Numbered from the stretch's first letter, positions 11,746 through 57,734 are shown. The stretch is 64,000 bases of DNA from Macrostomum lignano (GCA_002269645.1 NIVC01000137.1:186001-250000); one strand, 5' to 3'. The notes: generated by a model not told the origin, from the letters alone. Program-made: numbers and translations.

Positions 11746-12018
11746 ATCACAAGGCTACAACCCATTTTTTTCAGGGAAGCCTTGGAATGCAGTCGATGTT
11801 GCTTTGTCAAACCGCTCGGAGGCATGAGGAGAATCATCTGGGCAAAGTCATCTTCTTACCGCATACAAACTTTACTGGAGTTTTACTAGTCACAGTTGGG
11901 AACTGCCTCCCAAACTATAGGGAATTTGACAGGAAAGAAGAAAGAAAAAGGAAGACAACGGAAGACTTGCTGGGATGCAACAATGGCAGGATTTTTGGTC
12001 TCTACTGGATAGAAGTTG

Positions 12019-12814
12019 ATGCGATCGATGATGCTGCAAACGGAAAAAGCATTGTTTTTTGCTAGGAAGTTGCTTCGACCGACGCAATACAGGAAACACA
12101 GACGCCTAGCGAGAAGGCTTCTTAAACAATTCTGTGCTCTGCTGTCGTGCCCTTCTCCATTCTACCTCGAGGCGGGCAAGTGCGTGTTCGTCAACACAGC
12201 GCACAGCTACACATGGTGCGAGGCCAACCGAATCTGTGCCTCCATAGGCGGTGAGTTGGTCAACTCGTACGAGTCCGTGAAGCTGGTGGTTCTTCAAAAC
12301 ATTTCAAGTGTTAACCGCGAATGCCAGTTGTGGGTCGGACTGAGCGACCTGGCAGATGAGAAAGGCACTAGCAGGGCTGGCTGGCATAGAATAAATGGCA
12401 AAGGCCTGCTTCCGGTAGACCAAATTTTGTTCTATCCAGGCGAGCCAAGTGGGGACAACTGCCTACGCAGCTTAAAAGATACTCCGTATAGGCCTGGCTG
12501 ACGGATCTTGCAACTCTCGCTTCGGTTTTGTCTGCGAGTTTTCTAACGAGCCGACTACATGGACATCGACTTCTGGCTTTTGGATGCGTGATAATTTCAA
12601 GCGCATGCAGTACAACTCCGATTACTGCTTCACCAGCGTGACAGACCTGAGCAGCGCTGTCGAGTGCACAGCGGCCGCCATGCGAAATGGAAACTGCAGA
12701 CACGTGCTGTACAACAGCAAGCTGAGAGCCTGCCGCCTGCTGCTGTTCACCGACGCTCAGGTGGAGGCTGAGATCGAGACGAGCGCCGACTGGGTCAAGT
12801 ACCGACTCAAATGA
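12019..12814 (+). pseudogene. C-type lectin + PAN/Apple-like gene, frameshifted copy
   Basis: CTLD (CPSPFYLEAGKC..WCEANRIC..LWVGLSD..GEPSGDNCL) is paralogous to 13431-14153. One extra base near 12493 gives TGA at 12499-12501; the other frame resumes LADGSCNSRFGFVCEF and runs to 12814. No clear signal peptide, and the start is uncertain. A sequencing indel cannot be excluded. Confidence 0.7.
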
Positions 12815-13430
12815 ATTGAAGAAACTTTTGACAGTGCAAGAAATCGATTTGGAATGGTCCTCTAACACAGAAACAAGCTTTCCGTTAAGATTAATAAAAC
12901 ACAAGCTCTGTGGTTCGGTCATTCTCTGGCATTCGATCAAGCAAATTAAACGAACTGTGTTATCGTCTGAGTCATTTAACAGGGCCCGTTTGTTCTGTTG
13001 AGCTGTATGACTGATTTTTCTGTTCTCATGGCCAACTGGCTGAGTTTCATGAGCCCATTGTGCTACAAAAGACATTTTAGACTTCGAGGCTTGTCAAGGT
13101 CTTTTTTCTAATGATGAGGCGCCTAATTTAAGCCGAGTCTCGTGTAAAAGTATCGCAGCAGATGAGAGTTCTCCCAAGAAGAGGAGAACTGGAAATCAAA
13201 CCAGACACAACCTCTGCAAATACCACAATTGCCATTCATGTTTAAGGGGCTTCCAACATATGAAAAACTCCACCATGCGCATGCTGAACTTTCTTTTTTA
13301 CCTGTCTAATTAGCTGGTTAGGAATTTCGCCCCGGAATTCTGCGCGTATAAAGCGACAGACAAAAATGCGATTAGCGCCAGGCTGCTCAGCCTCTTGCAG
13401 AATCGTTGAAAATTTTGGCTTGTCAAGCAA

Positions 13431-14153
13431 ATGCTATTACTGCTCCTGTTCCACCTGTGCAGCCAGCCTGTGTTGCTATGGCCTCAACCGTGCCCAGCTC
13501 CGTTCAAACTCGAGGCAGAAAAATGCCTGTTCGTGAGCACAGCTCAGAGTCACAGCTGGTGCGAGGCCAATCGGCAGTGCGCCGCGATCGGGGGCGAGCT
13601 GCTCAACTCGTACAGCTCGCTGCAGCTGCTGGCTAGCAACGAAATTTCGAGCACCAACTGCAACTGCAACCTGTGGATTGGAGTGAGCGACCTGTCGGAT
13701 GAAAGAGGCCACAGCAGGTCCGGCTGGCAGAGGGTTAATGGCAGAGGACAGCTTCCGGAGGACAATTCCTTGTTCAAGTCGGGTGAGCCGAGCGGAGACG
13801 ACTGCCTGCGACTGTCCGAAACCTCCGGCCGACTTGCCGACACATCGTGCAGCTTTTCTGCCGGGTTTGTCTGCGAGTTTTCTAGCGATACGAGCGTCCG
13901 AAAGGCGTCTGTCGCTATCTGGAGAGCCGCTGAGTTCAAGCGAGTGCAGTACAACTCCAAGTACTGCTTCGAAGACGTGACGGACGTGAGCAGCGCTGTC
14001 GAGTGCACAGCGGCCGCCATGCGGAATGAAAACTGCAGACACGTGCTGTACAACAGCAAGCTGAGAGCCTGCCGCCTGCTGCTGTTCACCGACGCTCAGG
14101 TGGAGGCGGAGATCGAGACGAGCGCCGACTGGGTCAAGTTGCGTCTCAACTAA
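13431..14153 (+). CDS. Secreted C-type lectin domain + PAN/Apple-like domain protein, single exon, 240 aa
   Basis: Hydrophobic N-terminus, CTLD cysteine pattern with WIG and EPS motifs, C-terminal C..C..C..YN...C pattern (CTAAAMRNENCRHVLYNSKLRACRL). Confidence 0.88.
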   Translation: MLLLLLFHLCSQPVLLWPQPCPAPFKLEAEKCLFVSTAQSHSWCEANRQCAAIGGELLNSYSSLQLLASNEISSTNCNCNLWIGVSDLSDERGHSRSGWQRVNGRGQLPEDNSLFKSGEPSGDDCLRLSETSGRLADTSCSFSAGFVCEFSSDTSVRKASVAIWRAAEFKRVQYNSKYCFEDVTDVSSAVECTAAAMRNENCRHVLYNSKLRACRLLLFTDAQVEAEIETSADWVKLRLN

Positions 14154-20913: not shown

Positions 20914-23900
20914 ATGGAAGTGCTGGAAACGCACAAGAAAACTCCCGAGCTGCCAGAAAAGGTGAGATTAAAAATATCTTGATGATGCTGTTAATTTTGT
21001 CTATGGCATCAGTTTCCTATAATACAAGCTGTCTATGACACACCAGTTCCCTATATGACACAAGCTGTCTATGACACATCAGTTCCCTATATGACACAAG
21101 CTGTCTATGACACACCAGTTCCCTATATGACACAAGCTGTCTATGACACACCAGTTCCCTATATGACACAAGCTGTCTATGACACACCAGTTCCCTATAT
21201 GACACAAGCTGTCTATGACACACCAGTTCCCTATATGACACAAGCTGTCTATGACACATCAGTTCCCTATATGACACAAGCTGTCTATGACACACCAGTT
21301 CCCTATATGACACAAGCTGTCTATGACACACCAGTTCCCTATATGACACAAGCTGTCTATGACACACCAGTTCCCTATATGACACAAGCTGTCTATGACA
21401 CATCAGTTCCCTATATGACACAAGCTAGTTGGTTACTAACTAATTTTTGTTACAACTTACTGTTTATACAAACTAAATGAACTATATCATGTGACTAAGT
21501 CTGTGTTAACGCAGAGTTTAATGGTTTGTGGGCGAGTTGTAGGTTATTTTAACGTCCTTGTTTGTCAATTAGTTGGGTAGGTACTACGTGTAAATGAAGT
21601 TTATCTAAGTCGGAATTTTCTTAAAAATAGACTCCTCTATCAAGCTGAGGTCAATATCGGCAGTTAAAATAGGTTTTAGACCTTTGCACCCACTCAAGAT
21701 AAGAGTTTGAATTTTATTATTGGTCATACATTGACAGACATCATAAAAATGAGTCTAAAGTCTAAAGATTGTTTCATTGTACGTGTGTGATTACCTTGCC
21801 TTTTCCAGGCTGATAAACAAACCTGTTACTGGGTTCTTTTTAGAACGCGAAGTCACTTACATAGTCTATCTATTGTCAGTTTTACGTTTTACGTACATTT
21901 TGCCACTTAATGATTCGAGATCTTGTCACTCGAGGATTCGAGATCTTGTCACTCTAGGATTCGGGATCTTGTCACTCAAGGATTCGGGATCTTGTCACTC
22001 TAGGATTCGGGATCTTGTTACTCGAGGATTCGGGATCTTGTTACTCGAGGATTCGGGATCTTGTCACTCTAGGATTCGAGATCTTGTCACTCTAGGATTC
22101 GGGATCTTGTTACTCGAGGATTCGGGATCTTGTCACTCTAGGATTCGAGATCTTGTCACTCTAGGATTCGGGATCTTGTCACTCAAGGATTCGGGATCTT
22201 GTTACTCGAGGATTCGGGATCTTGTTACTCGAGGATTCGAGATCCTGTCACTCGAGGATTCGGGATCTTGTCACTCTAGGATTCGGGATCTTGTTACTCG
22301 AGGATTCGGGATCTTGTCACTCTAGGATTCGAGATCTTGTCACTCAAGACTTTAGGATCTTGTCACTCAAGACTTTAGGATCTTGTCACTCAAGACTTTA
22401 GGATCTTGTCACTCAGACTGGCTCAGTTATTCGGGATCTTTTGTCGCTCACTTAATGAATACCTGTCCAACCCGCACAGGCCCGCTCCATCATAGCCAGC
22501 CTCAGTCTGAGCACAGACGATTACGAAGCCATCGGCGACCTGATGGCGTCAAGTTTCGAAGCGGGACTCAAAGCCTCGGGCGGGCCGAAGCCGGCCGTGA
22601 AAATGCTCTGTTCCTACGTGACCAAACTACCGTCTGGTAGCGAGGCTGGCGACTACCTGGCGCTAGATTTGGGTGGCACAAATTATCGCGTGCTGCTGGT
22701 CCGACTGCGTGGCAGCGACCAGGAGCCGGAGATACTCGAAGACGTGTACGCCGTTCCGCAGGTGCGAACTCACAAATTAGCTAGTCATGCATGTCTACTT
22801 TCAGTAGCTTACAATTTAGAGGTTCTATTAATTTTAGCTACTATATTTATTTTCAGTGTTTATTTCTAGAATGTTTTCATTGCTACTTAAAGTAGCATAA
22901 ATAGACACTCAACCCAATTTTATACCAAAATCTCAGGAGCTGATGCTCGGCGATGGTGCCGCTCTGTTTACCTTCATTGCTGGAACTCTTCGGGATTTTT
23001 TGCAAGCTAATCAACTGTCTGCCGAACCTGATGGCGAGCGATTGAAGCTGGGCTTCACCTTCTCCTTTCCTGTTGAACAGCACGGGCTGAGCAGCGGCAG
23101 TTTGATTATGTGGACTAAAGGCTTTGCGGCTAAGGGGGTTGTGGGCCGAGATGTCTGCAAGCTGCTGCAGGTGAGCGAAACCAATTTTGTAGAAGATTTA
23201 AGCTTAATCAGGATCAGAATCGGGATCAACAGGGTCAGAATCGGGATCAACAGGATCAGAATCGGGATCAACAGAGTCAGAATCGGGATTAACAGGATCA
23301 GAATCGGGATCAACAGGATCAGAATCGGGATCAACAGGATCAGAATCGGGATCAACAGGATCAGAATCGGGATCAACAGGATCAGAATCGGGATCAACAG
23401 GATCAGAATCGGGATCAACAGGATCAGAATCGGGATCAACAGGATCAGAATCGGGATCAACAGGATCAGAATCGGGATCAACAGGGTCAGAATCGGGATC
23501 AACAGGATCAGAATCGGGATCAACAGGGTCAGAATCGGGATCAACAGGATCAGAATCGGGATTAACAGGATCAGAATCGGGATCAACAGGATCATAATCG
23601 GGATCAACAGGATCATAATCGGGATCAACAGGGCCAGAATCGGGATCAACAGGGTCAGAATCAGGATCAACAGGATCAGAATCGGGATTAACAGGATCAG
23701 AATCGGGATCAACAGGATCATAATCGGGATCAACAGGGTCAGAATCGGGATCAACAGGGTCATAATCGGGATCAACAGGGTCAGAATCGGGATCAACAGG
23801 ATCAGAATCGGGATTAACAGGGTCAGAATCGGGATCAACAGGATCAGAATCGGGATTAACAGGATCAGAATCGGGATCAACAGGATCATAATCGGGATCA

Positions 23901-26900
23901 ACAGGATCATAATCGGGATCAACAGGGCCAGAATCGGGATCAACAGGGTCAGAATCAGGATCAACAGGATCAGAATCGGGATTAACAGGATCAGAATCGG
24001 GATCAACAGGATCATAATCGGGATCAACAGGGTCAGAATCGGGATCAACATGGTCTGAACTGGGATCTCGATTACTAGTAAACATTGAGTTAAATCCGGC
24101 AAACTTTCCAGGAAGCCATCGACAAGGCAGCTTTGCCGATCGTCTGCGTCGCTCTGGTCAACGACACGGTCGGCACGCTGGCCTCCTGCGCCCTGGAAGA
24201 TCCTCGCTGCCAAATTGCAGCCATCGTTGGCACGGGCTCCAATGCCGCCTACGTTGAGAGACGCTCGGCTATGGAGCGGTACTCGGACAGTCTGGCCGGG
24301 GTGTCCGACGGCGGCCCGGACGGTCCGGTGGTTGTCAACACAGAGTGGGGCAACTTCGGAGTCGACGGCTGCTTGGACCGGTTCCAAACCGATTTTGATA
24401 GGGAGATCGATAAGAAGAGTCTTAATCCGGGGTTTCAGGTGCGTGTAGTTTGGGATTCCACTGCGGGGATTTGGTATGTACCCATTTAACCTTTTCGCTG
24501 TACGGGATTCTGCTGTGGGGATGTGGGATTCTGCTGTAGGGGTGTGGGATTCTGCTGTAGGGATGTGGGATTCTACTGTAGGGATGTGGGATTCTACTGT
24601 AGGGATGTGGGATTCTGCTGTAGGGATGTGGGATTCTACTGTAGGGATGTGGGATTCTGCTGTAGGGATGTGGGATTCTGCTGTAGGGATGTGGGATTCT
24701 ACTGTAGGGATGTGGGATTCTACTGTAGGGATGTGGGATTCTGCTGTAGGGATGTGGGATTCTACTGTAGGGATGTGGGATTCTGCTGTAGGGATGTGGG
24801 ATTCTGCTGTAGGGATGTGGGATTCTACCGTAGGGATGTGGGATTCTGCTTTAGGGATGTGGGATTCTACCGTAGGGATGTGGGATTCTGCTTTAGGGAT
24901 GTGGGATTCTGCTTTAGGGATGTGGGATTCTACTGTAGGGATGTGGGATTCTGCTGTAGGGATGTGGGATTCTACTGTAGGGATGTGGGATTCTGCTGTA
25001 GGGATGTGGGATTCTGCTTTAGGGATGTGGGATTCTGCTTTAGGGATGTGGGATTCTGCTGTAGGGATGTGGGATTCTACCGTAGGGATGTGGGATTCTG
25101 CTCTAGGGATGTGGGATTCTGCTTTAGGGATGTGGGATTCTGCTGTAGGGATGTGGGATTCTACCGTAGGGATGTGGGATTCTGCTTTAGGGATGTGGGA
25201 TTCTGCTTTAGGGATGTGGGATTCTGCTGTAGGGATGTGGGATTCTACCGTAGGGATGTGGGATTCTATTGTAGGGGTGTGGGATTCTACTGTAGGGATG
25301 TGGGATTCTACCGTAGGGATGTGGGATTCTACTGTGGGGATGTGGGATTCTACTGTTGGGATGTGAGATTCTGCTGTAGGGATGTGGGATTCTACTGTAG
25401 GGATGTGGGATTCTGATGTTGGGATATGGGATTCTGCTGTGGGGATGTGGGATTCTGCTGTAGGGATGTGGGATTCTGCTGTAGGGATGTGGGATTCTAC
25501 CGTAGGGATGTGGGATTCTACCGTAGGGATGTGGGATTCTATTGTAGGGGTGTGGGATTCTACTGTAGGGATGTGGGATTCTGCTGTAGGGATGTGGGAT
25601 TCTACCGTAGGGATGTGGGATTCTGCTTTAGGGATGTGGGATTCTGCTTTAGGGATGTGGGATTCTGCTGTAGGGATGTGGGATTCTACCGTAGGGATGT
25701 GGGATTCTATTGTAGGGGTGTGGGATTCTACTGTAGGGATGTGGGATTCTACCGTAGGGATGTGGGATTCTGCTTTAGGGATGTGGGATTCTGCTTTAGG
25801 GATGTGGGATTCTGCTTTAGGGATGTGGGATTCTACTGTAGGGATGTGGGATTCTGCTGTAGGGATGTGGGATTCTACTGTAGGGATGTGGGATTCTGCT
25901 GTAGGGATGTGGGATTCTGCTTTAGGGATGTGGGATTCTGCTTTAGGGATGTGGGATTCTGCTGTAGGGATGTGGGATTCTACCGTAGGGATGTGGGATT
26001 CTGCTTTAGGGATGTGGGATTCTGCTTTAGGGATGTGGGATTCTGCTGTAGGGATGTGGGATTCTACCGTAGGGATGTGGGATTCTGCTTTAGGGATGTG
26101 GGATTCTGCTTTAGGGATGTGGGATTCTGCTGTAGGGATGTGGGATTCTACCGTAGGGATGTGGGATTCTATTGTAGGGGTGTGGGATTCTACTGTAGGG
26201 ATGTGGGATTCTACCGTAGGGATGTGGGATTCTACTGTGGGGATGTGGGATTCTACTGTTGGGATGTGGGATTCTGCTGTAGGGATGTGGGATTCTACTG
26301 TAGGGATGTGGGATTCTGATGTTGGGATATGGGATTCTGCTGTGGGGATGTGGGATTCTGCTGTAGGGATGTGGGATTCTGCTGTAGGGATGTGGGATTC
26401 TACCGTAGGGATGTGGGATTCTACCGTAGGGATGTGGGATTCTATTGTAGGGGTGTGGGATTCTACTGTAGGGATGTGGGATTCTGCTGTAGGGATGTGG
26501 GATTCTACCGTAGGGATGTGGGATTCTGCTTTAGGGATGTGGGATTCTGCTTTAGGGATGTGGGATTCTGCTGTAGGGATGTGGGATTCTACCGTAGGGA
26601 TGTGGGATTCTATTGTAGGGGTGTGGGATTCTACTGTAGGGATGTGGGATTCTACCGTAGGGATGTGGGATTCTGCTTTAGGGATGTGGGATTCTGCTTT
26701 AGGGATGTGGGATTCTACTGTGGAGATGTGAGTTTCTACTTTCCAAATTTGTATTTATGTTACTTAATAAGCCTGTTCGAACCCCCCATTCCTTTCCAAC
26801 CCAGGTGTTCGAGAAGCTCATCAGCGGCATGTACCTTGGCGAAATAGTTCGCTTAGCTATCAAATCCCTAGTGGATGATGGCATCATATTTGGCGGCCGC

Positions 26901-29609
26901 ATGCCTGAGTCCCTTGTTCAGCCCATGACCTTTCTGACCAAATACCTGAGCGAGATTGAGAGAGATCCGCCGAAGCACTACTACAGCACGGACCAGCTGC
27001 TCACTGTTGACTTGGGCTTGAAGCTTGTCCATCCCATCGAAGCTGTCATCGTTCGAAGCATTTGCGAGGCCGTATCGACCAGGTCCGCTTTTCTGGTTGC
27101 TACGGGCATCGCCTCGTTGTTGAAACGGATTAAGCCTAGCGGTCACGTGACTGTTGGCATCGACGGGTCGCTGTTCAAGTTTCATCCGCACTTTCCCGAG
27201 CGAATGACACGCAAAGTGCAGGAATTGTGCCCCGATTACGAGGTGAATTTGAGAAGCTTTTTGCTGCCCTTTTATAGCTTGAGAAATGTATCAGCTGAAT
27301 CCTTATTTTTAGCATCTGAAACCCGATTCTCAGCATCTGAATCCCGATTCTCAGTACCTGAATCCCGATTCTCAGCATCTGAATCCCGATTCTCAGTACC
27401 TGAATCCCGATTCTCAGCATCTGAATCCCGATTCTCAGTACCTGAATCCCGATTGTCAGCATCTGAATCCCGATTCTCAGTACCTGAATCCCGATTGTCA
27501 GCATCTGAATCCCGATTCTCAGTACCTGAATCCCGATTGTCAGCATCTGAATCCCGATTGTCAGCATCTGAATCCTGATTCTCAGCACCTGAATCCCGGT
27601 TCTCAGTACCTGAATCCCGATTCTCAGTACCTGAATCCGGATTGTCAGCATCTGAATCCCGATTCTCAGTACCTGAATCCCGATTGTCAGCATCTGAATC
27701 CCGATTCTCAGTACCTGAATCCCGATTGTCAGCATCTGAATCCCGATTCTCAGTACCTGAATCCCGATTGTCAGCATCTGAATCCCGATTCTCAGTACCT
27801 GAATCCCGATTCTCAGCATCTGAATCCCGATTCTCAGTACCTGAATCCCGATTCTCAGCATCTGAATCCCGATTCTCAGTACCTGAATCCCGATTGTCAG
27901 CATCTGAATCCCGATTCTCAGTACCTGAATCCCGATTGTCAGCATCTGAATCCCGATTGTCAGCATCTGAATCCTGATTCTCAGCACCTGAATCCCGGTT
28001 CTCAGTACCTGAATCCCATTTCTCTCAGTACCTGAATACCGATTCTCAGTACCTGAATACCGATTCTCAGCATCTGAATCCCGATTCTCAGTACCCGAAT
28101 ACCGATTCTCAGTACCTGAATACCGATTCTTAGTATCTGAATCCCGATTCTCAGTACTTGAATCCCGATTCTCACTACCTGAATCCCGATTCTCAGTACC
28201 TGAATCCCGATTCTCAGTACCTGAATCCCGATTCTCAGTACCTGAATCCCGATTCTCAGTACCTGAATACCGATTCTCAGTACCTGAATCCCGATTCTCA
28301 GTACCTGAATACCGATTCTCAGTACCTGAATCCCGATTCTCATTACCTGAATCCCGATTCTCAGTACCTGAATCCCGATTCTCAGCATCTGAATCCCAAT
28401 TCTCAGCACCTGAATCCCGGTTCTCAGTACCTGAATCCCGATTCTCATTACCTGAATCCCGATTGTCAGCATCTGAATCCCGATTCTCAGTACCTGAATC
28501 CCGATTGTCAGCATCTGAATCCCGATTCTCAGTACCTGAATCCCGATTCTCAGTACCTGAATCCCGATTCTCAGCATCTGAATCCCGATTCTCAGTACCT
28601 GAATCCCAATTCTCAGTACTTGAATCCCGATTCTCAGTACCTGAATCCCGATTGTCAGCATCTGAATCCTGATTCTCAGCACCTGAATCCCGGTTCTCAG
28701 TACCTGAATACCGATTCTCAGTACCTGAATACCGATTCTTAGCATCTGAATCCCGATTCTCAGTACCTGAATACCGATTCTCAGTACCTGAATACCGATT
28801 CTTAGTATCTGAATCCCGATTATCAGCATTTGAATCCCAATTCTCAGTACCTGAATCCTGATTCTCAGTACCTGAATACCGATTCTTAGCATCTGAATCC
28901 CGATTCTCTCAGTACCTGAATACCGATTCTCAGTACCTGAATACCGATTCTCAGTACCTGAATACCGATTCTTAGCATCTGAATCCCGATTCTCAGTACC
29001 TGAATACCGATTCTCAGTACCTGAATACCGATTCTTAGTATCTGAATCCCGATTATCAGCATTTGAATCCCAATTCTCAGTACCTGAATCCTGATTCTCA
29101 GTATCTGAATCCCGATTATCAGCATCTGAATCCCAATTCTCATTACCTGAATCCCAATTCTCAGTACCTGAATCCCGATTCTCATTACCTGAATCCCGAT
29201 TCTCAGTACTTGAATCCCGATTCTCAGTACTTGAATCCCGATTCTCATTACCTGAATCCCGATTCTCATTACCTGAATACTGATTATCAGTTCTTGAATC
29301 CCGATTCTCAGTATCTGAATCCCGATTATCAGCATCTGAATCCCAATTCTCAGTACCTGAATCCCGATTCTCAGTATCTAAATCCCAATTCTCAGTACTT
29401 GAATTCCGATTCTCAGTATCTGAATCCCAATTCTCAGTACTTGAATTCCGATTCTCAGTATCTAAATCCCGATTATCAGTACTTGAATCCCGATTTCAGA
29501 CATTTAAATTCTGATTTTATAGCCCTCTTGAATTGAATTGCAGTTCACCCTGAAGCTGTCAGAGGACGGCAGCGGCAAAGGAGCGGCTGCTATTGCTGCT
29601 CTGGTCTGA
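20914..29609 (+). CDS. HK: Hexokinase (single domain, about 50 kDa)
   Basis: Six exons, all phase 0: 20914-20961, 22480-22761, 22937-23170, 24112-24438, 26805-27242, 29544-29609. Motifs [80 protein letters not shown]. Exon 1 is the least certain. Confidence 0.96.
21020..21425. repeat. 36-bp minisatellite in hexokinase intron 1
   Basis: ACAAGCTGTCTATGACACACCAGTTCCCTATATGAC, about 11 copies. Confidence 0.95.
21912..22415. repeat. 23-bp minisatellite GGATTCGGGATCTTGTCACTCGA in hexokinase intron 1
   Basis: Directly visible. Confidence 0.95.
23205..24052. repeat. 21-bp minisatellite AATCGGGATCAACAGGATCAG in hexokinase intron 3
   Basis: About 40 copies. Confidence 0.95.
24503..26725. repeat. 21-bp minisatellite GGGATGTGGGATTCTGCTGTA in hexokinase intron 4
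   Basis: About 105 copies, with a 903-bp higher-order period. Confidence 0.95.
27310..29515. repeat. 21-bp minisatellite TGAATCCCGATTCTCAGTACC in hexokinase intron 5
   Basis: About 100 copies. Confidence 0.95.
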
Positions 29610-31480: not shown

Positions 31481-32977
31481 TCAATCAACAAAGATCAAGT
31501 CTCTACTAAGAGACGAAAACACGCGCGCACGCGTAGTGCAGATTTGTTCGTCTTCCTGTTGCTGCACGTCTTCAGCGGCATGCGACAGGCAAGCCGGGAG
31601 ATCAATCCGATGCGGATCCGCCGTGATTCGATTCGCCAGAGCCTTCAAAAGCTTCAAACAACCGCAGCAATCGTCACCAGATTCCGCAGTCTCTAGGGAG
31701 TAGCCGTAATGGATAAATAAATCTTTGTTCAGGCGAACTGCACTACTCAAATGATCCATTGGCAGCAGAGCATTCGGGTTTTCAGTTTCGTCGTGTTGCA
31801 AAATTAGCAAAATTTTCGGCTTCCCGTTGAGGCTGCAGCAGTCGATGAGCGGCTGGAGCAGGGCGGCGGGATTGGCAGAAATCTGGGCGATGGCAGGGGC
31901 GGACCTGTGCAGTAGCAGCATCACGGCTAGACAGTCTGTCTGGCTGTGTTCCACACTGGCTACTATAAGTAGGAAAATAGGATTGGTAAAATAATGAATC
32001 ACGAAATTCTAATCTAGATGATGCGAAAGGTGTGCTAATCGAGATGATAAAGGAGTGCCAATTTAATCTAGACGATAAAGGTGTGCTAATCTATATGTAC
32101 GAGTAGATGATAAAGGTGTGCTAATCTAGATGATAAAAACGATTAGCCAAACTTTGTAGGTATATATATCACAGATCTTATATATATATAGATATTCTGT
32201 ATATCTATACACATAAAAATCATACAATATATAATCTATATAGCTCTGTATATATAATCCATTAGGCAAAAATTTAGTATTGTGGACTAGCACAATGCCC
32301 CCCACAGAGTTCTCACCTGCCCGAAGCTCGCTCAGGATGTCATCCAACTTATCGAGATTAAAAAACGAGTGCGTGATAAAGCCGAGACCTCGAAGCAGGT
32401 CACGAGCGGCGCGTTGTGCAGCCGAACTGCTTGTCGATTCAAATTGTTGGTGAAAGAAGCAAAATACCAGAGCATAACGGCGCCGTCTGCTTCTGCTGAT
32501 GGTGGCCTCATGAGCACTCGGTGCGAATGGCGGTGTGCATGTCTTCTGTGAACTAAAAAACGTTTTGTTTTATTGAAATGCAATTTAGGAAACACGCATA
32601 ATTGAAAGTATGCAGCATACTGTCGACTGTACATGTACAAGTATGTAAGATACATGTACCTGATAATGGCTTCTGTCTGTTCAATTTATAAATAGCAACT
32701 GCCCTGTAGTATTCGGTGCCATTTTCGCACAAGAATAATAATTAATTTTTCAATTTTTCGATAATAATATCAATGATATTAATACCTTGAAAATCTTCTT
32801 TGTTTCTAAGTATACAATACATGCGATTAACGCTCACCAACTCAGGCCTAAATTAGCACCATTAGTAACGGTCGAAAACACCTGCTGAGATCCAGCAGTG
32901 TCGCAGTCGCCAACATCGAAGCCACCTCGTTTCTGTCGCCCTGACGACCAGCAGGTACAGGCAAGCAGCCTCTTCAT
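31481..32977 (-). CDS. Caspase-fold protein with a degenerate active site (pseudo-caspase), about 285 aa
   Basis: Phase-compatible exons 32977-32838, 32552-32317, 31962-31481. Caspase landmarks in order: RRYALVF, RDLLRGLGFITHSFFNL, HSQTDCLAVMLLLH, SLNGKPKILLILQ, DLFIHYGYS, LLKAL, SSLSRDLIF*. Confidence 0.82.
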
Positions 32978-33554
32978 CTTGGCTATCGGTAAGGCAATTC
33001 TGTTGAATAAACGATAACTGCAGGGAAAACTTTCGCTTTAAGAAACGATATTATACGATTTTATATCGGCACTTATTTGTTACATATCCATGTATATATA
33101 GAGCGGCGCCACACACGCACACACACAGAAAGACCTACATGAAATCCATGATGATTTTATCTTAATCTACGTAAACAGCTGTTAGAAAAACTGGCTTCCT
33201 GTGTTGTTGAGAGAAATTAAAAGTTTTTGCCAATCGAATAAGCTACTTCAAGTATAAACAAATTATTTTTAGGGTTTGCATTTGTCATCGCTATGAAATT
33301 AGAAACGAACAAAATGCACTGCCAGTGCAAGCTTTTCTCTGTGGCGAGAAATCACACGTAGAAGCGATGGATCTACCAGCACTTATTTATTTTATTTACA
33401 AGCAATTTGCACAGATATTGTAACCCAGGTGCGAAATGCATTAGTTGTAGCGCAGAACAAAATAATGAAACATTATATCCAATAAAAGCTCTATATCAAT
33501 GACTGCCTGATTGCCTAAGAAAGCGCATCCTCGCTTAAAGCACGCCAATCTAAA

Positions 33555-34088
33555 ACCAGAATACACTCAATCTAAAAGCAGAAGACACCCTAATCTAAAA
33601 CCAGAAGACACTCAGGCTAAAAAAGCATAAGACACCCCAATCTAAAAGCAGAAGACACCCCAGGCTAAAAGCAGAAGAAAATCCAAGCTAAAAGCAGCAG
33701 ACATTCAATCTAAAAGCAGAAGACACCCCAGGTTAAAAGCAGAAGACACTCCAATCTAGGAGCAGAAGACATTTCAATCTAAAAGCAGAAGAAACCCGAA
33801 TCTAAAGCAGAAGACACTCCAATCTAAAAGCAGAAGACACCCCAATCTAAAAGCAGAAGACATTCAAATCTAAAAGCAGAAGAAACCCCAAACTAAAAGC
33901 AGAAGACACTCCAATCTAAAAGCAGAAGACACCCCAATCTAAAAGCAGAAGACACTCCAATCTAAAAGCAGAAGACACCCCAATCTAAAAGCAGAAGACA
34001 CTCCAATCTAAAAGCAGAAGACACTCCAATCTAAAAGCAGAAGACACCCCAAACTAAGAGCAGAAGACACTCCATCCAAAAGCAGAGA
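33555..34088. repeat. 23-bp minisatellite AATCTAAAAGCAGAAGACACCCC
   Basis: Directly visible. Confidence 0.95.
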
Positions 34089-34102
34089 AACACCGGTTCA
34101 CA

Positions 34103-35899
34103 TCAAGCCACCAGGACAAGAAACAATTTCACACCTCTGTTCAACACCGGCCGACAGTTCACCAACATATGCGGCCTATCAGTTAGCGCGGCGGCATTCA
34201 TCACCATGGCAACCTGTTCCACACCAGTAGGATAGAACTGCATAACAGTTAAACCGCCGGGTCTGACAATTCCTGTAGCATTGCTTAGCAAAACAAAGGC
34301 CATTGGTTGCCCCCCGCTTAGCAGGCACTGCATCGCGGACACTGAGACTGCCGAGTCAGCCATCCCACGCCTGACAGGCCATTGCTGTTTAGTCAGATCG
34401 CAGCGGACCTGATAATAGCAATTGCCAGCTAACAGGGTCTTTGTTGGTCTTTGTTGTTGGTTAAAATCGGCAGGCAAGCAGAGATCCAGGCCCAGCACTG
34501 GTAGTTCGGGCGGCAGCCGAGCCACCGGGCCGCAGCCAATGTCGGCCACAAGGTGGTCGGACGGAACTGTCCGAGGCACCCCGGCAAGTGCCAAGGCCGT
34601 GGTGTACAGCGGCTGTTGAATCCGCTCGACTCTGGTTGATAAGCTGCCGTCGCTTGCAATGGCACAGGCTTGGAGAGGATCTGGAGGTAAAATCAATTCA
34701 TTATCGAAAAATAGATAATTCGCGACTGGCAATGATTGGCGTTGGCAGGGGCGGAGCGGTCAATTGAGTCGCCTAGGCGTGCGGAAGGTCCCGGGTTCGA
34801 GTCCCGAATAAGTGATTTTCTGGCGATTCTTGGGGTGGTTTGTGGGGCGATTCTTGGTGGTTTGTGGGGCGATTCTTGGGGTGGTATGTGGGGCGATACT
34901 TGGAGTGGTTTGTGGGGCGATTCTTGGAGTGGTTTGTGGGGCGATTCTTGGTGGTTTGTGGGGCGATTCTTGGTGGTTTGTGGGGCGATTCTTGGAGTGG
35001 TTTGTGGGGCGATTCTTGGGGTGGTATGTGGGGCGATTCCTGGGGTAGTATGTGGGGCGATTCTTGGAGTGGTTTGTGGGGCGATTCTTGGAGTGGTTTG
35101 TGGGGCGATTCTTGGGGTGGTATGTGGGGCGATACTTGGGGTGGTATGTGGGGCGATTCTTGGAGTGGTTTGTGGTTCGATTCTTGGGATGGTTTGTGGG
35201 GCGATTTTTGGAAGGGAACTGGTTTGTGGGCGATTCTTGGAGTGGTTTGTGGGGGCGATTCTTGGAGTGGTTTGTGGTGCGATTCTTAGGGTGATTTGTG
35301 GGGCGATTTTTGGAAGGGAACTAGTTTGTGGGCGATTCTTGGAGTGGTTTGTGGGGCGATTCTTGGAGTGGTTTTTGGGGCGATTCTTGGAGTGGTTTTT
35401 GGGGCGATTCTTGGAGTGGTTTTTGGGGCGATTCTTGGAGTGGTTTTTGGGGCGATTCTTGGAGTGGTTTGTGGGGCGATTCTTGGAGTGGTTTTTGGGG
35501 CGATTCTTGGAGTGGTTTGTGGGGCGATTCTTGGAGTGGTTTGTGGGGCGATTCTTGGAGTGGTTTGTGGGGCGATTCTTGGAGTGGTTTGTGGGGCGAT
35601 TCTTGAGGTTTAGACTAGGAGGAACTCTAAACTGTCTCAGAATTTACACAGCAATAGTGAAGCTGCATGAAAAACACCAACACAAGTTCTCGATCGTCAG
35701 CCACACCTGGAACTCGGTTCTCCGGTCGGCGCGGACTTCTAACCCGCCGCAGCCCGCGCACAACCTGGCGCCAACAGGGCGCCAGACAGACCGGCGCCAT
35801 CAGAGACAAATGGTTGCGCAGTCGTGTCAGAGCAGACATCAATTGCGGATGAGGGCCCGAAGGCATTGCCGCCAATGCCTCAACCTTCTTGACAACCAT
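34103..35899 (-). CDS. Class I SAM methyltransferase, BUD23/WBSCR22-like catalytic domain
   Basis: Main exon 34680-34103: RVERIQ..ALAL, VADIGCG, GLDL, WPVRRGMADSAVSVSAMQCL, VMQFYP..Q, matching the BUD23 motif order. Acceptor TTTTACCTCCAG at 34681-34682. Candidate exon 1 at 35899-35707 is phase-compatible but has no recognisable homology (low confidence). Confidence 0.7.
34743..34806 (+). mobile_element. tRNA-like Pol III head (SINE or tRNA pseudogene)
   Basis: A-box-like GGCGGAGCGG; T-arm CGGG-TTCGAGT-CCCG with B box; no convincing acceptor stem. Confidence 0.5.
34815..35610. repeat. 24-bp minisatellite GTGGGGCGATTCTTGGAGTGGTTT
   Basis: Directly visible, in the candidate methyltransferase intron. 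Confidence 0.95.
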
Positions 35900-38117: not shown

Positions 38118-39895
38118 TTAAAATCGTTTTTTCCTCTCGTCCAGACTGACCCCGCCAGGTCCCACGGCCACCACAAGCAGCAGGCCGCCAATAACCGACA
38201 TAGTCTGGAAGAAGTCGAAGCGCATCACATCACGCCTAGTAGACGTAGCCGCCAAACTCCACCAGGGATTGGCAATCAAATTGATGATTAATAATTTCAA
38301 CGAAGCAGCCAGTGCGCATAATTTTGTCTTATAACCGACTGCTATGAGTAGTACTAGCAGCAGATCAATGCCGAAATTCAGCATGTAGACAGCGGTGTCA
38401 AACCTGGCCAGGGTGGCCAGCATTAACAGGACCAGCAGGCGACCAGACAGCAGCAGCCAACGACGGTGCCGGCCGCCTTCGCCTGTGCTGGGCAATCCAG
38501 CAAACAGGGAGCGGGCTTCCACCCTGCCAGGGGGGAGACAGGTAAGTGTACAGCTATGTTATTGGAATAACTTGTTGAGGCAAAACTTAGACAGAATTTA
38601 GGCGCTCAAATCGTCATAGTATAAATTCCTGAGTTATAAGATTTCAGTCGGATCCCCTCTGTGGAACCAGTAGAATCTCCCTTAAGTAGAATATCCCCCT
38701 CCAGTGGAATATCCCCTACAGCGAAATATTCCCACACAGTGAAATATTCACCTCCAGTGGAATATCCCCTCCAGTGGAATATCCCCTCCAGTGGAATATC
38801 CCCTCCAGTGGAATATCCCCTCGAGTGGAATATCCCCCTTTAATGGAATATCCCCCTTTAGTGGAATATCCCCCCAGTGGAATATCCCCTACAGCGAAAT
38901 ATTCCCACACAGTGAAATATTCACCTCCAGTGGAATATCCCCTCCAGTGGAATATCCCCTCGAGTGGAATATCCCCCTTTAATGGAATATCCCCCTTTAG
39001 TGGATATCCCCCTTTAGTGGAATATCCCCCCAGTGGAATATCCCCTACAGCGAAATATTCCCACACAGTGAAATATTCACCTCCAGTGGAATATCCCCTC
39101 CAGTGGAATATCCCCCTTTAATGGAATATCCCCCTTTAGTGGATATCCCCCTTTAGTGGAATATCCCCCCAGTGGAATATCCCCTACAGCGAAATATTCC
39201 CACACAGTGAAATATTCACCTCCAGTGGAATATCCCCTCGAGTGGAATATCCCCCAGTGGAATATCCCCCCAGTGGAATATCCCCCTTTAATGGAATATC
39301 CCCTCCAGTGGAATTCTCATTCAGTAAATCAACCCTTAAAAGAATTCCCTTTTAATGGAATCCCCCTAAGTTGAGTTCCCCTATGGTGGAATCAACAATT
39401 AGTAGAACCCCACGTCAGTGGAATCCCCTTCAGTGAAATCCCACTCAGTAGAGTGAAATTTTACACAATTGAGTCACTTTTTCTATCAGCATCTCTCTCA
39501 TTTAGATAAGCAGCTAGTCAAGGAGCGAATGCCACTCACCTAGACTCAACAAAGAGAAGCAGAACACCACCGCCAATGGCCAAATTTCTCAATAGAAAAT
39601 TGGACTCCCACAGAATCTGGTAGGCAACAGACTGCAGCAGCAGTACAGAGGCCAGCATAGCGCAAGCAATTTCAACGCGACACCGGAGCAGCACCATGGC
39701 ACAGCCGGCCAGTTGCAACAGCATGTTGGCAATTACAAAACTGTGCCCAGCAACTGCTGGAGCATTCCACTGATGCTGAATGTACTCAGCCTGATCAGAC
39801 CACTGCACCCACATTCGAATGCCATCTTCTAAGTAGGTGCTAATTAGGCATAGGCGAGCCACAGTTGGTATAAGATGTTTGCTTCGGCGTAGCAC
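38118..39895 (-). CDS. SURF4: Surfeit locus protein 4 (ER cargo receptor, Erv29 family); first short exon not located
   Basis: Exons 39895-39540 and 38523-38118. Motifs LPTVARLCLISTYLEDGIRMW-type N-terminus, FLLRNLAIGGGVLLL, VGYKTKL, FDFFQTMSVIGGLLLVVAVGPGGVSLDERKKRF* (C-terminal dilysine ER signal). Confidence 0.95.
38670..39325. repeat. About 17-bp minisatellite CCAGTGGAATATCCCCT with larger block duplications, in the SURF4 intron
   Basis: Directly visible; the block CAGCGAAATATTCCCACACAGTGAAATATTCA recurs four times. Confidence 0.93.
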
Positions 39896-42800
39896 CTGTT
39901 GCAATAAAACAAAATTAATCTTTGTAATTGAATAATAACAAATTAATTAACAAGTATTTGCTAGAAGGTACTGCCACGTCATATATGTGCAACACCCGCT
40001 TGATCTGTCTGGCTGGCGAGGGGCCCAGCTAAGTCGCCTTAAACATAGTACTAATTAGATAACGAGGCATTTAGCCTTATTAATACAGTCATAGTTACTC
40101 TCACCGTTTACCCAACATTACGTTATTTTTTTGCTTAGGTTTTTTTTTGGAAGTTGCATGGCCAGTGTAAATCGGGGGGTTGTGCATGTATGTGCCAAAT
40201 TATTAGCTAGAGCCTAACACAGGTATGGAAAGTTACAGATATGGTTATGGGAATGCATGTTTTCCATGTCTATTAATATTGGGCACTCAAATCACTAGAA
40301 TCAAAATAATTGAAATCCTTAGAGTAGAAGTAATGAAGAGGTTTAAAATTCAGATGAATTCTAGAGAAAAAAACACAATCTATTTATTGAATTGTTAAAT
40401 ATCTACTAGTTTAGAGGATGAAGCCCTGATTATTAAAGTAGTAAGGTGGGGCTCAAAGTCAAAGGACTTCAGATTAAGAATAAGAGAAATTAGATGTGCA
40501 TAGCACAGAAGGACCCATTTTAATAAGAAGATGGTAGGAAGTATAATGTGGCATAGCAAATTGGCAAGTGGCAACAGGAGGTATAGTAGGTGGCAAGAGG
40601 TATAGCTTAGTGTGGCAAAGTAATGGGAAGCAGTAAGAAGTGCAGATTGGCATAACAATGTGGCAATAAATGATATATGGCATAGAGAAATGGCAAGAGG
40701 CCCACATTCTAGATCCTAGATAATATATACTTGATCAACAAAAAGTTTGAGTTATCGCTATGTCTCAATGCTTCAATCATTTGCTCTGAAACTTTAATCA
40801 ATTCTTGATGCATGTCTCAGCTTTGCAATGACATCTTAGACAGATGATTGTCTTTTGCATTTCCTAAGATATTTGCTTCCAAAATGTGTTTGTAAGGGGT
40901 GCCAATGAATTTATCTTTTGACACACTTTGTATTTGTGCCATGTTTTTTCTTTTGGGACAGAAAATTTCTACTTATAATTTTTTTAAAGCTGAATATGGC
41001 ATTAGAGTAAGGAATGTATTCCAAAACATGAATTAATTTTTTGTTTGAATTATCTGTTTGAAAGAAAAATATTTGTTGGGAGAATATTTATTAGAGAACC
41101 CGCTTACCCACACATGTGGCAGTGGCAGAAAGCAATAGGAGATGCAATGTGGCAAAGCTTTATAATACTTTTACACTTCGTATAGGCCTTTTGAATATAA
41201 TCTCACTCAACTGTTTTTGAATTCCAAGCCCATTTTTTTAATTTTGAGAATTTCTTAAAATACAATGACCTTAAAAAAGACTAGGCCTAAGTCTTGAAAT
41301 TTTGTCTTTGAGATTAAGACTAAGATCAAGATCTTAGTAAGACTCTAGCTATTAATCTAGTAACCAGATGAAAAATAGCATTGCAATTTGTCAAGTTACT
41401 AGACAAATAATAGCTACCTTGTTCTTATTTTAATTCACTAGGCCTAGTCAATTGCTATTTACTATAAACTATAGAACTAGGCTTAGGAGTTATATGTTGC
41501 ATCTTATTATTTGTCTATTAAAAGTTTTTAGTCAGCCAGCAAACAAAAAGGTGGCAGGAAAAATCACTGCATACCATACTAGGCTGGCTATTAGGCACAA
41601 GAGTCTACTATTGTATTTTTCTTAGTAGTAGGGGCCTAGGCCATATACCTAAAACTTTTATAATTGAATTTTTTTAATTTTAGGCCTTGGCAACTTTTGG
41701 CACACATAACATGATCACAACTATGGGATGAAAGTTGACAGAATGGGACACAGTCATAGCATAGTAAAAGTAAACACTAGTAAATACCTAGGCCTAGCCT
41801 AGTAAGCACTGCACAGATAATTTAATAGTTTACAAACCTTGTCTGCAATATCTTCTAGATTATCCAGGAAATCAGTTTTGCCTTTATTGTAAACAGACAT
41901 TCTTTAAAACTTTAAGATAGGCCTAGCTGGCTCAATGCTAAAATAGCTATTTAGAAAACAATGAAATTAAAAGTAGGCCTAAAAGAAATATGCAAGTTCT
42001 AATTCTAATCCAAAATTTAATAATTTATAGAAAATCGCAACTTTTCCCTTACAAAAGAGCTATCTAGTATATGACTACTTTGTAACTTCTTTACACTTCG
42101 TCAGATAACTGCTTTAGTTTCTAACATTAGGCTAGTTTTGTGTCGTGGTGATAGGTTAGTGGGTTAGTAGGTCAGTAGATAGTAAGAAAACGTGACTTAC
42201 TAAATAAAAATTGAAAATACTTAGTTCTTTTTTAGTTAAAACAAAACGTACACTTTTTAAATAACAGAAAGCAAATATTAATTGAAATATTTTAATTTTT
42301 TCAATGAAAGTATACATTTATATTTACAAATACTTTATCTGATATTTTTAAGAAGGCATCATCATCGCGGTTATTCAATTTTTTGCTACTTTTAATTAGC
42401 CTAGCGTAGCCTAGGGCCAATGTAGCCTAGCCTATAGCCTGGGTAGGTTAATTAAGCCAGCTGTTAAGCAAGCAAAAGTTAACGACTGTTGGCGTTATAC
42501 GAGTAATTAACAATGCAAATTAATCAGCCGTCTTTATTGATATGTAATATTAGAAAACATTCAGACGCATATGATTCGGTGTAATTCGATCTATATTACC
42601 ATATTACTAAAATAAAAGTAGTTCTTACTCTTATTTATTTTAATATTTTACCATTGTCAGCTGTCAGAATCGAACCCATGCCGATCATCGCCATGGCCAT
42701 ATCTAATTCAAGTTCAAATTGATGCGTGTATGATTTATCATTTATGTAATTTAAATGTACTATAATCTATAAACATAGTATAATGTTCAGGGGAATAGGC

Positions 42801-53839: not shown

Positions 53840-56344
53840 TCAAACGGGTCGCATATTATCCCTAAGCGTCGCATCGTAGCTCAGCAACCGGGAGAATCTT
53901 CTCAACAATCGCAGCCAATAGCAGGCCACATCAGAGTCTCGCAGATGCTTGTCAATAAAATGGGCGCCCTCAGCGGCCAGGCGCTTAGCCCAGTCAGGAT
54001 TAGCGCGCAGGAACAGCAGTTTATCTTCGGCGTCGCGCAAGTTGGGCAACAGCGGCACGTAGTGAATCCACGGCCGCATTGCCGGGTAGAAAAACTCGCG
54101 CCAATTTGAATTCTTGTCAACGGCGTGCAGCACTGCCGAGCCGCACAGGAGGATGTGACGCAGGCGGAAGCTGGCCGCTACACCGCGCATGTTGATTAGA
54201 TACCTGCGAGCCAAAGCAGATCGGTAAAACCGTCTTGATTGATGCAAAAATATCAGCAACAAAAGGCATGATTATAAACTAGCCACTATCAGCATGCGGG
54301 AGTGCCACTTGCTCAGCCAGCTCACCTGTACTTGCAGTGCTCAGGCAGGCTGACGTAGGGCGCCGGCTCCAGATTCAGGGTGTCGGCGGCCGACTTGTAA
54401 GCCTGATTTTTTGTATAACGGGCGTCGAACAGCTCCGGCTTAGCCAGCGACAGCAGAACGATGGCGTCGCGTTCCTGCGAAGTTCGAGAGCCTCTGAAGA
54501 AGGCAACGTCGGTCTTGTTTGACCAGGGATGCGCCTGGGCGGCAGCGAGCAACTGCTGACGGGTGCCGTTCCAGTCGCCGATGCCATTGCTGCAGATGAT
54601 GGATTGATTTATAGATAGGTATTAATATACAGAAATACGATCTACACATATTTAAAATACCCCAAAGGCAGACAGAGAGAGACAAACAGACAGACACAGA
54701 CAGAGACAGGCAGACAGACAGAGATAAACAGACAGATACAGAGACAGGCAGACATAGACGGACAGAGACAGGCAGCAGACACTAAGGCTGTCTAACCTGT
54801 AAATAGGATGCAGACAGGGGCCGCCCTGACTGAAGGACCAAGTGGGATACAAAATATCCCTATGCCGGCCGTCGGACTTGCTAAACGACATGACAGGCGC
54901 GGGTCTCAACGGAGTCTCCGGAACGAGAGGATAGTCGGCCACGTTGATAACGAATTCCACATTCCTAGACACACGCGGCGCCGCACGCAATAGATAGTGC
55001 TCAACGCCTGAGCAGCGGGCCGAGAAATGACGGCATTCGCTTGAGTTGCGGTAAAGTTTTCCGTCTATGATCTTGTAAGATGGAGGGGTTGAAGCGGTAC
55101 TACATTAATAGTACATGCATTTGTACATAAAAATCGTGATACATTTAAAGGTGAAATATGTTGCAGCTAATTAAATTATTGGCAACAGCTAATGATACGA
55201 GATAATAGCTTCGTTGCCATAGTAACAGATAATTTATAGCTGATAGCGCCATTGTCTACCTCTAGTTAGTAAGAACAGTGAGCATAAGCGCATTATATGC
55301 TAGGCTCAGTGTTCAGTTGCATAGAGGACGTTAAGTAACGGCTTGATAAGAAAATTTTGTGGGTGGGGCTGAGGAATCAGAGTAAGCGGGGCAGGAAAGT
55401 GGGGGTGGGTTGATTGGTCCGAGTTGGCGGGGCAGGAAAGTGGGGGGTTGGGTTGATTGGTCAGAGTTGGCGGGGCAGGAAAGTGGAGGGCGGGGTTGAT
55501 TGGTCCGAGTTGGCGGGGCAGGAAAGTGGGGGTGGGGTTGATTGGTCAGAGTTGGCGGGGCAGTAAAGTGGAGGGCGGGGTTGATTGGTCAGAGTTGGCG
55601 GGGCAGGAAAGTGGAGGGCGGGTTTGATTGGTCAGAGTTGGCGGGGCAGGAAAGTGGAGGGCGGGTTTGATTGGTCAGAGTTGGCGGGGCAGGAAAGTGG
55701 AGGGCGGGGTTGATTGGTCGGAGTTGGCGGGGCAGGAAAGTGGGGGGTTGGGTTGATTGGTCAGAATTGGCGGGGCAGGAAAGTCGGAGGGTTGAGGGGA
55801 CGGAGATTGTGGGCAGGAAAGTGGGGGTGGGGTTGATTGGTCAGAATTGGCGGGGCAGGAAAGTCGGAGGGTTGAGGGGACGGATATGGCGGGGCAGGAA
55901 AGTGGGGGGTGGGGTTGATTGGTCAGAATTGGCGGGGCAGGAAAGTCGGAGGGTTGAGGGGACGGATATGGCGGGGCAGGAAAGTGGGGGTGGGGTTGAT
56001 TGGTCAGAATTGGCGGGACGGGAAAGTCGGGTCGGGAGGGTTAAGGGGACGGTTCAGTCACCCACCTGGTACAGAATTCCGCCCAGTCGGACAGCCTCGT
56101 CAATATCCTTGCGGTGAACACCGCCAGCAAAAATGCTCAAGTCTGACTTCAAAGTCTGCTCATAGATGGAACAACTAGCGATGTCTAACGGACGCTTGTA
56201 GGCCGACCAGGCCGATTCGAGTTCCAATTGATAAGTGCGCCAAGCTGCGCTACACTGGCCGTCGCCAGCTGGGCCGCAGTTAAGCGACAAAGAATTTTTA
56301 ACTATTACTACTAACAAAGCTACTGCAAGTAGGAATGAACGCAT
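53840..56344 (-). CDS. POGLUT1: Protein O-glucosyltransferase 1 / Rumi (GT90, CAP10 domain)
   Basis: Phase-compatible exons 56344-56066, 55071-54797, 54589-54326, 54203-53840. Signal peptide; [94 protein letters not shown]. Confidence 0.94.
55209..55329 (-). ncRNA. H/ACA snoRNA-like element, copy A (POGLUT1 intron 1)
   Basis: 5' hairpin CCTCTA/TAGAGG, internal pocket, GAACA/TGTTC upper stem; H box AGACAA 15 nt from the pocket top; second hairpin. The terminal box reads ACG rather than ACA. Confidence 0.5.
55385..56040. repeat. About 42-bp G-rich minisatellite GGCGGGGCAGGAAAGTGGGGGTGGGGTTGATTGGTCAGAGTT
   Basis: About 15 copies in POGLUT1 intron 1. Confidence 0.93.
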
Positions 56345-57663: not shown

Positions 57664-57734
57664 CTTCTAGATAGGGCTGGCCGGCTGGCGGTGCCGCTGT
57701 GGCTGCGGGGTAGCGCGAGGTGGAACTGGTGAGA

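Follow-up and report, generated by a model that had tools for sequence, protein, structure and literature searches.

Mlig030275.g2, a gene on the minus strand of a 64-kb stretch of the Macrostomum lignano genome (NIVC01000137.1, assembly GCA_002269645.1; the whole stretch is called the window below), encodes what is probably a non-enzymatic pseudo-caspase, a kind of protein already known in other animals. It is a real, transcribed, three-exon gene, as judged from its transcript-based annotation. Homology of its product to the large subunit (p20) of caspases is secure at the level of sequence, and both the nucleophilic Cys and the substrate-binding residues of the active site are lost. The gene appears to be maintained and not decaying. 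We propose that this catalytically dead caspase homologue is kept for a non-catalytic role, which would be binding to an active caspase of the effector type; taken as a whole, we judge the proposal about equally apt to prove right or wrong.

Gene model and large-subunit homology

An earlier note on this DNA had put forward three phase-compatible exons encoding about 285 aa, with frame and splice sites intact. Splicing and translation reproduce that reading frame: two GT..AG introns separate three exons whose joined coding sequence of 858 nt gives a 285-aa product, 100% identical to GenBank PAA89807.1 (BOX15_Mlig030275g2, Mlig030275.g2, “hypothetical protein”, partial), which bears out the flatworm origin that the note had assumed. 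No stop codon interrupts the coding frame, the other two frames of the spliced sequence containing 14 and 16, and GC content is 0.52–0.58 in the exons versus 0.31–0.32 in the introns (the value of 0.32 for intron 1 refers to the interval 32553–32881, from a donor at 32882 to the acceptor at 32552). The coding sequence of PAA89807.1 is annotated as 5ʹ partial and begins at 32998, seven codons upstream of the ATG. The GenBank models of this assembly go back to RNA-seq: transcripts were assembled with guidance from the genome and divided at spliced-leader and poly(A) sites that had been mapped experimentally, and TransDecoder called the open reading frames (PMC5730564). Hence, a spliced transcript is supported indirectly, since the database model with exactly these junctions comes from RNA-seq assemblies and not from ab initio prediction.

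The first intron can be removed in two ways that restore the frame. Joining 32838 to 32552 yields the 285-aa form, and joining 32882 to 32545 yields a form of 268 aa; a third combination, donor 32882 with acceptor 32552, was rejected because it breaks the frame. The two forms differ by 17 residues (VFSTVTNGANLGLSCSQ), and the alternative junction touches only residues 33–49. The long form is represented by the transcript-based GenBank model and by a model from the ML2 assembly in which the gene is fused to its upstream neighbor, and the short form by the ML2 model of a second copy of the gene (UniProt A0A1I8G143).

The upstream neighbor, Mlig030275.g1, and the caspase-like gene carry one transcriptional-unit name, Mlig030275, which makes the caspase-like gene the downstream member of an operon-like unit. 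Operons of this type reportedly hold about 15% of M. lignano genes (PMC8629364). The fused model, UniProt A0A1I8GAQ7, which comes independently from the older ML2 assembly, joins g1 to exons 1–2 of the caspase-like gene. Between the two genes is a spacer of 1103 nt (32999–34102), half of which is a 23-bp minisatellite (33541–34086, 24 copies); once the repeat is subtracted, the spacer is shorter than the 1-kb repeat-adjusted operon threshold that was applied to M. lignano in PMC8629364. We had considered g1 as a paralogous locus, and rejected this because it is the adjoining upstream gene in the same unit. Judged from the sequence context, the AG at 33001–33000 is likely to be the trans-splice site for the spliced leader, a reading that fits because the 5ʹ end of the GenBank coding sequence sits one base past it. 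A second candidate acceptor, TTTTCCCTGCAG followed by T, is found ~20 nt farther upstream and is the one used in the fused ML2 model.

Kinship with caspases, which the note had put forward from the sequence, is borne out by a HMMER search with Peptidase_C14 and by profile comparisons. Pfam PF00656 (Peptidase_C14) scores 23.6 bits over residues 72–181, above its gathering cut-off of 21.4. A phmmer search of the PDB places human caspase-6 at the top (E = 2e-6), followed by Spodoptera and Drosophila effector caspases with E-values up to ~8e-3. Against a profile built from eight active arthropod caspase domains, the whole sequence reaches 36.9 bits and the aligned stretch 35.9 bits. Comparison with arthropod caspase domains in hhalign yields a probability of 97% and E = 1e-10 over residues 68–180.

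The N-terminal region is short. It begins with MKRLLACTCW, confirmed as residues 1–10, and the note's statement that no DED or CARD precedes the caspase-like domain agrees with the Pfam scans: at E ≤ 10 the full protein matches Peptidase_C14 and nothing else, neither DED nor CARD, and residues 1–72 scanned alone match no domain. Two short Asp-ending motifs, DVGD24 and LPMD195, are compatible with processing by caspases, and cleavage at these sites is possible.

The active site

At the position of the caspase SHG motif the protein had been read as LLHRS, with the His kept and the Gly lost, and this is what the alignments show: H144 aligns with the catalytic His, and Arg145 occupies the column of the oxyanion-hole Gly. 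At the position of the QACRG motif the note had read QHDET, with no Cys. The absence of Cys stands in either register, but the register itself was off by one. Three alignments made independently (to caspase-6 by phmmer, to ten arthropod domains by MAFFT, and to a profile of active domains) run without gaps past the invariant KPK and set L180-Q181-H182-D183-E184 against Q-A-C-R-G. The nucleophile column is thus held by His182, not Asp183, the Gln column by L180 and the Gly column by E184. In none of the three alignments is there a Cys or Ser within 15 residues of this column; the nearest Cys residues are C167, a conserved Cys without catalytic function that belongs to “CPSL”, and C223. Neither these alignments nor the register of the note bring a Cys to the nucleophile position.

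The S1 pocket, which in caspases comprises two Arg and one Gln, is also missing. In the alignment the first Arg faces a gap, L180 takes the place of the Gln, and ETAESGDDCCGC stands in the SWR/GSWF region. Because neither the catalytic Cys of QACxG nor the S1 residues were found, the protein is classed as a non-peptidase homologue and not as an active family member. Judged by its predicted active site, it cannot act as an Asp-directed cysteine protease. Matches obtained in tblastn searches with active caspase domains end at 31802, directly ahead of the degenerate pentapeptide, and the same searches reveal no second caspase-like coding segment or Cys-bearing alternative exon in the window; hence, no alternative exon could restore the active site. 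The protein has retained its hydrophobic core and two strands, that of GKPK and that of the catalytic His; the Cys and Gly of the active site have been replaced, and the S1 residues replaced or deleted.

Apparent maintenance, proposed role and alternatives

The case for maintenance is indirect and draws on the pattern of change within the domain. We defined strongly conserved columns as those identical in at least eight of ten arthropod caspase domains. Of 57 such columns, 28 are retained in the flatworm protein and 29 have changed, compared with ~22% identity overall. Many losses in the core are conservative (exchanges among F, I and L, T to S, D to E), whereas those at catalytic and substrate-binding positions are radical. 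Since half of the most conserved columns are altered, the lineage is old. When unconstrained substitution was simulated on the coding sequence, an open frame survived in 8% of runs at 20% residue change, in 1.3% at 30%, and in none of 300 at 50%, which makes prolonged neutral evolution very improbable. We infer that the frame was under selection during most of the dismantling of the active site. A very recent loss of function is still conceivable.

A second copy of the gene, that in the ML2 assembly, covers exons 1–2 only (107 aa, 96% identical) and is labelled automatically in UniProt as “CASPASE_P20 domain-containing protein”. All four of its residue differences precede the first domain strand, with none in the 55 domain residues, an arrangement with a chance of ~0.06. 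This clustering outside the domain is a weak hint of maintenance. None of the usual marks of a pseudogene (disruption of the frame, loss of splice signals, lack of a transcript) was found. Together with the contrast between a retained core and a replaced active site, and with the simulations of decay, the open frame, canonical splicing and transcript-derived model argue for the note's view that the gene is maintained rather than decayed.

What might a caspase homologue without a nucleophile do? To our knowledge, all characterised catalytically dead caspase homologues act on live caspases, and by analogy with these we propose binding as the most likely role of the Mlig030275.g2 product. The inhibitor or scaffold acting through heterodimerisation that the note had suggested is an analogy of the same kind. 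As a single-domain, short-prodomain homologue of effector-type caspases, it would pair with an active caspase as a dead protomer. Alternatively, it might serve as a decoy that is bound by a caspase or cut by it at DVGD24 or LPMD195. In either mode, heterodimer or decoy, it would tune caspase activity.

Several results weigh against this proposal. No orthologue was detected in other species by an exhaustive HMMER search of 1.84 billion protein representatives, M. lignano proteomes included, or by a word-indexed protein search. The former returned only the protein's own copy and distant multi-domain arthropod caspases below E = 1e-3, as would suit the lineage-specific protein that the note had envisaged; the latter returned only the protein itself, and the domain alone at E ≤ 10 added nothing. 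Nor was a close active paralogue that could serve as partner found in the window or among the 1.84 billion representatives, where no M. lignano paralogue reaches ~35 bits. Papers on M. lignano and on lophotrochozoans gave no expression level, tissue or phenotype for Mlig030275. A further point concerns translation. The M. lignano spliced leader ends in AUG (PMC8629364). If the 35-nt leader is joined at 32999, past the AG at 33001–33000, its AUG comes to lie 22 nt ahead of the main ATG and in a different frame. The upstream open reading frame that would start there, 46 codons in length, overlaps the main start and could lower translation of the caspase-like protein.

The small-subunit (p10-like) half, which would carry the dimer interface, belongs with these objections, being by sequence the least caspase-like part of the predicted protein. 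The note had described p20- and p10-like segments in caspase order. The p20 part is significant and the order is colinear, but the p10-like half lacks significant similarity when taken alone. Residues 190–285 score 0.2 bits against the profile of active domains, a value equalled by 89 of 2000 shuffled sequences; they have no PDB match at E ≤ 10; and hhalign gives them 0.7% probability, aligning only the last 21 columns (SSLSRDLIF with STLTRxLxF). The region is of the right length, is colinear with caspases in the global MAFFT alignment and carries the terminal SSLSRDLIF motif. An AlphaFold2 model computed from an 11-row alignment has a mean predicted local distance difference test score (pLDDT) of 81 and a predicted template-modelling score of 0.82; its p10-like part, with a pLDDT of 59–91 per ten-residue block, shows the strand-helix-helix-strand order expected of a p10 subunit. 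The top PDB matches of this model in Foldseek are caspase-7, caspase-6 and Spodoptera caspase-1 (probability 1.0, template-modelling scores 0.6–0.68, 229–267 aligned columns). The model is biased towards the caspase fold because the other ten rows of the alignment are caspase domains, and a single-sequence AlphaFold model was uninformative (pLDDT 36). We regard the assignment of the C-terminal third to a small subunit as plausible, though tentative, on the strength of its length, colinearity, terminal motif and modelled fold.

An alternative explanation for the locus is that it is an expressed but functionless relic, a duplicate that lost its activity and has been drifting ever since, with its frame open by luck or because the loss was recent. 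We consider this unlikely, albeit a serious contender. Redundant copies are common in the highly duplicated genome of M. lignano (PMC5730564), the operon-like unit could supply transcription without selection, and the lack of a detectable orthologue outside M. lignano, the passage of the small-subunit half beyond sequence recognition, and the loss of the catalytic and S1 residues, all except the His whose strand the alignments show to be retained, would suit a relic. A recent loss is, however, hard to reconcile with the depth of divergence, seen in the 29 near-invariant columns that have changed and in the lack of any paralogue above ~35 bits, and luck with the closure of the frame in 300 of 300 simulations of neutral change of this size. 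The splice sites, start codon and poly(A) signal are intact, core residues are preferentially kept and the AlphaFold2 model is confident, and the second copy is open across exons 1–2 with an unchanged domain.

It is also conceivable, and in our estimation slightly more improbable than the relic, that the caspase fold was put to a new use unrelated to caspases, as a scaffold for other partners or around a putative site for a small ligand or metal made up of H144, H182, D183 and E184. Two His and two acidic residues do stand on former catalytic positions, the fold is kept while the entire substrate groove has been rebuilt, the surface of the small-subunit half does not resemble its caspase counterpart, and there is no near paralogue, among the 1.84 billion representatives, to act as the natural dimer partner. 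Nonetheless, we found no positive sign of another partner or ligand, and the pseudo-caspases that we know to be characterised all act on caspases. That the protein is still a protease, through an unconventional nucleophile or a Cys from another alignment, isoform or exon, is scarcely credible: the catalytic His is retained and an alternative splice pair exists, but there is neither Cys nor Ser near the nucleophile column, the coding sequence from the His to the C-terminus is one uninterrupted exon and so permits no exon swap at the site, the alternative junction is confined to residues 33–49, the window holds no second caspase-like segment, and neither the oxyanion Gly nor the Arg and Gln of the S1 pocket have survived.

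The gene itself is already on record, as a GenBank hypothetical protein and, for the second copy, as an automatically labelled caspase p20 protein in UniProt. Our literature searches found no flatworm pseudo-caspase or Cys-less caspase, and the terms “pseudo”, “inactive” and “QACRG” are absent from the main text of a survey of lophotrochozoan apoptosis genes that includes M. lignano (PMC11463336). A fuller version of the binding proposal would make Mlig030275.g2 the first pseudo-caspase of Platyhelminthes: a Macrostomum-specific protein of which only the fold is caspase-like, under selection, expressed from a spliced-leader operon, setting the threshold of caspase activation by pairing with an effector caspase or acting as its decoy, and of an origin independent of FLIP, CSP-2/3 and the insect decoys. 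We advance this composite claim tentatively and think it rather more apt to fail in some part than to hold throughout. If it were true, the threshold of cell turnover in a regenerating flatworm would be set by a dead caspase homologue. M. lignano is amenable to transgenesis and RNA interference, and a further independent case in this flatworm would be a tractable one for studying the origin of such regulators and their role in stem-cell-driven tissue turnover. As a single, lineage-restricted locus, the gene is a lead for those who work on cell death in flatworms and no surprise for the field at large.

The surrounding window and known caspase homologues

The coordinates of the gene, its motifs and its upstream neighbor are collected below.

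Table 1. Features of the caspase-like gene and its operon-like unit, in order of transcription (window coordinates).
Feature	Position	Strand	Description
Upstream gene Mlig030275.g1 (PAA89808.1, 256 aa)	exons 35899–35707 and 34680–34103	−	two exons; 1.1 kb upstream of the caspase-like gene
Short 5ʹ leader and AG acceptor	32978–32999; AG at 33001–33000	−	context TTCAACAG followed by A; candidate spliced-leader trans-splice site
Exon 1 (coding part)	32977–32838, 140 nt	−	ATG at 32977; residues 1–46 plus 2 nt; donor GTGAGC from 32837
DVGD (DxxD motif)	32917–32906, residues 21–24	−	N-terminal peptide, at about the position of effector-caspase prodomain cleavage; kept in the second copy
Intron 1 (285-aa isoform)	32837–32553	−	GT..AG
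Exon 2	32552–32317, 236 nt	−	residues 47–125; large-subunit homology starts; first strand RRRRYALVF, residues 69–77
Intron 2	32316–31963	−	GT..AG; GC 0.31; 28-bp tandem repeat 32009–32097 and AT-rich simple sequence
Exon 3	31962–31481, 482 nt including stop	−	residues 126–285: remaining large-subunit homology, linker, putative small-subunit region
LLHRS	31915–31901, residues 142–146	−	catalytic His kept (H144); oxyanion-hole Gly replaced by Arg145
SLNGKPKILLIL-QHDET	31834–31784, residues 169–185	−	conserved GKPK strand (SLNGKPKILLIL, residues 169–180), then degenerate active-site pentapeptide without Cys (QHDET, residues 181–185, 31798–31784)
LPMD	31765–31754, residues 192–195	−	linker between large- and small-subunit regions; candidate Asp-directed processing site
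Putative small-subunit (p10-like) region	31723–31484, residues 206–285	−	ends SSLSRDLIFVD; caspases end STLTRxLxF
Polyadenylation signal AATAAA	31412–31407	−	begins 69 nt past the stop codon

The g1 protein has no Pfam match at E ≤ 0.01. It contains a GCG...LDL and QFYP pattern reminiscent of S-adenosylmethionine-dependent methyltransferases, and the UniProt label of the fused ML2 model is “FtsJ domain-containing”. The sole intron of g1 is filled by a 24-bp minisatellite (34822–35605, 32 copies) that gives a spurious 408-aa open reading frame on the opposite strand, and an AATAAA is located 706 nt past the g1 stop codon.

Other genes in the window include a hexokinase gene at 22480–29609 on the plus strand (Pfam Hexokinase_1/2), whose introns are packed with minisatellite arrays (~23200–24100, 24480–26850 and 27200–29540). 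These arrays yield many spurious open reading frames of 150–450 aa on both strands, and similar array-derived frames occur elsewhere in the window (39–880, 1358–2155, 5100–7430, 21017–22325 and 57440–58292). Two C-type-lectin-like exons lie at 12016–14153 on the plus strand; the open reading frame at 13431–14153 matches Lectin_C, and PAN below the cut-off, and that at 12016–12501 was recognised by eye only. The minus strand carries SURF4 (two exons, 38118–39904), a glycosyltransferase family 90 exon (53840–54262) and an RWD/UPF0029 (IMPACT-like) gene (59616–61316), in which a single long open reading frame crosses a PQLLGQPPRSSVAGPASQILSCWASL repeat array. None of the lectin-like, SURF4, glycosyltransferase and RWD/UPF0029 genes is related to cell death.

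Among active enzymes, the effector caspases (caspase-6, -7 and -3, and Spodoptera frugiperda caspase-1) most resemble the flatworm protein. They are its best matches in both sequence and model. Like the flatworm protein, they have a short prodomain followed by strands and helices in the same order, and the GKPK strand, the DC...H strand and the S-L-x-R-x-L-x-F motif at the C-terminus are common to both. In contrast to them, the flatworm protein has no catalytic Cys, oxyanion Gly, S1 Arg/Gln/Arg or GSWF, its loop before the linker is much shorter, and identity is only ~20–25%.

Three insect proteins, from Anabrus simplex (XP_068084304.1), Graphocephala atropunctata and Frankliniella occidentalis (XP_026285621.1), contain two or three caspase domains in tandem. 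Their N-terminal domain has no catalytic Cys (FIEASKG, FIQAREEE and FIHASEPN, respectively), and the downstream domains keep QACRG or QSCRG. They represent built-in pseudo-caspase domains fused to active ones. We rejected the arthropod tandem caspases as nearest relatives of the flatworm protein in a phylogenetic sense because their scores sum two or three domains.

The caspase-like domain of FLIP(L)/CFLAR also lacks the nucleophilic Cys, and there too the inactivating changes are maintained. FLIP(L) has lost the catalytic His as well, whereas the flatworm protein keeps it. FLIP(L), which descends from the initiator caspases-8/-10, carries tandem DEDs; the flatworm protein has neither DED nor CARD, its best matches are caspases-6/-7 and Spodoptera caspase-1, and cFLIP is absent among its sequence matches. 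Since it has no DEDs and matches effector caspases best, the flatworm protein is not an orthologue of FLIP. With respect to mechanism, FLIP(L) heterodimerises with procaspase-8 through the (pseudo)catalytic domains of both and is cut in its inter-subunit linker (PMC7586951).

Caenorhabditis elegans CSP-2 and CSP-3 are likewise catalytically dead caspase homologues. In work by Geng et al. of 2008 and 2009, they reportedly bind the CED-3 zymogen and restrain its autoactivation. CSP-3 corresponds to the small subunit only. In the flatworm protein, by contrast, it is the large subunit that is conserved and the small-subunit half that is poorly conserved, and the sequence relationship is one at the level of the family only.

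The mosquito protein CASPS18 offers a further parallel. This short-prodomain decoy caspase of Aedes aegypti enhances its paralogue CASPS19, as described in PMC4840389, which cites Bryant 2010. As portrayed in that account, CASPS18 resembles the flatworm protein in several respects: one caspase-like domain preceded by a short N-terminal region, effector-type kinship, lack of catalytic capacity and lineage specificity. Its presumed target is an active caspase and not substrates. CASPS18 has a close active paralogue with shared expression, whereas none was found for the flatworm protein in the searches above. The two proteins, one insect and one flatworm, are not orthologous and arose independently. 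Time and again, dead caspase homologues have become regulators of live ones, as with FLIP(L) in vertebrates, CSP-2/3 in nematodes and CASPS18 in mosquitoes.

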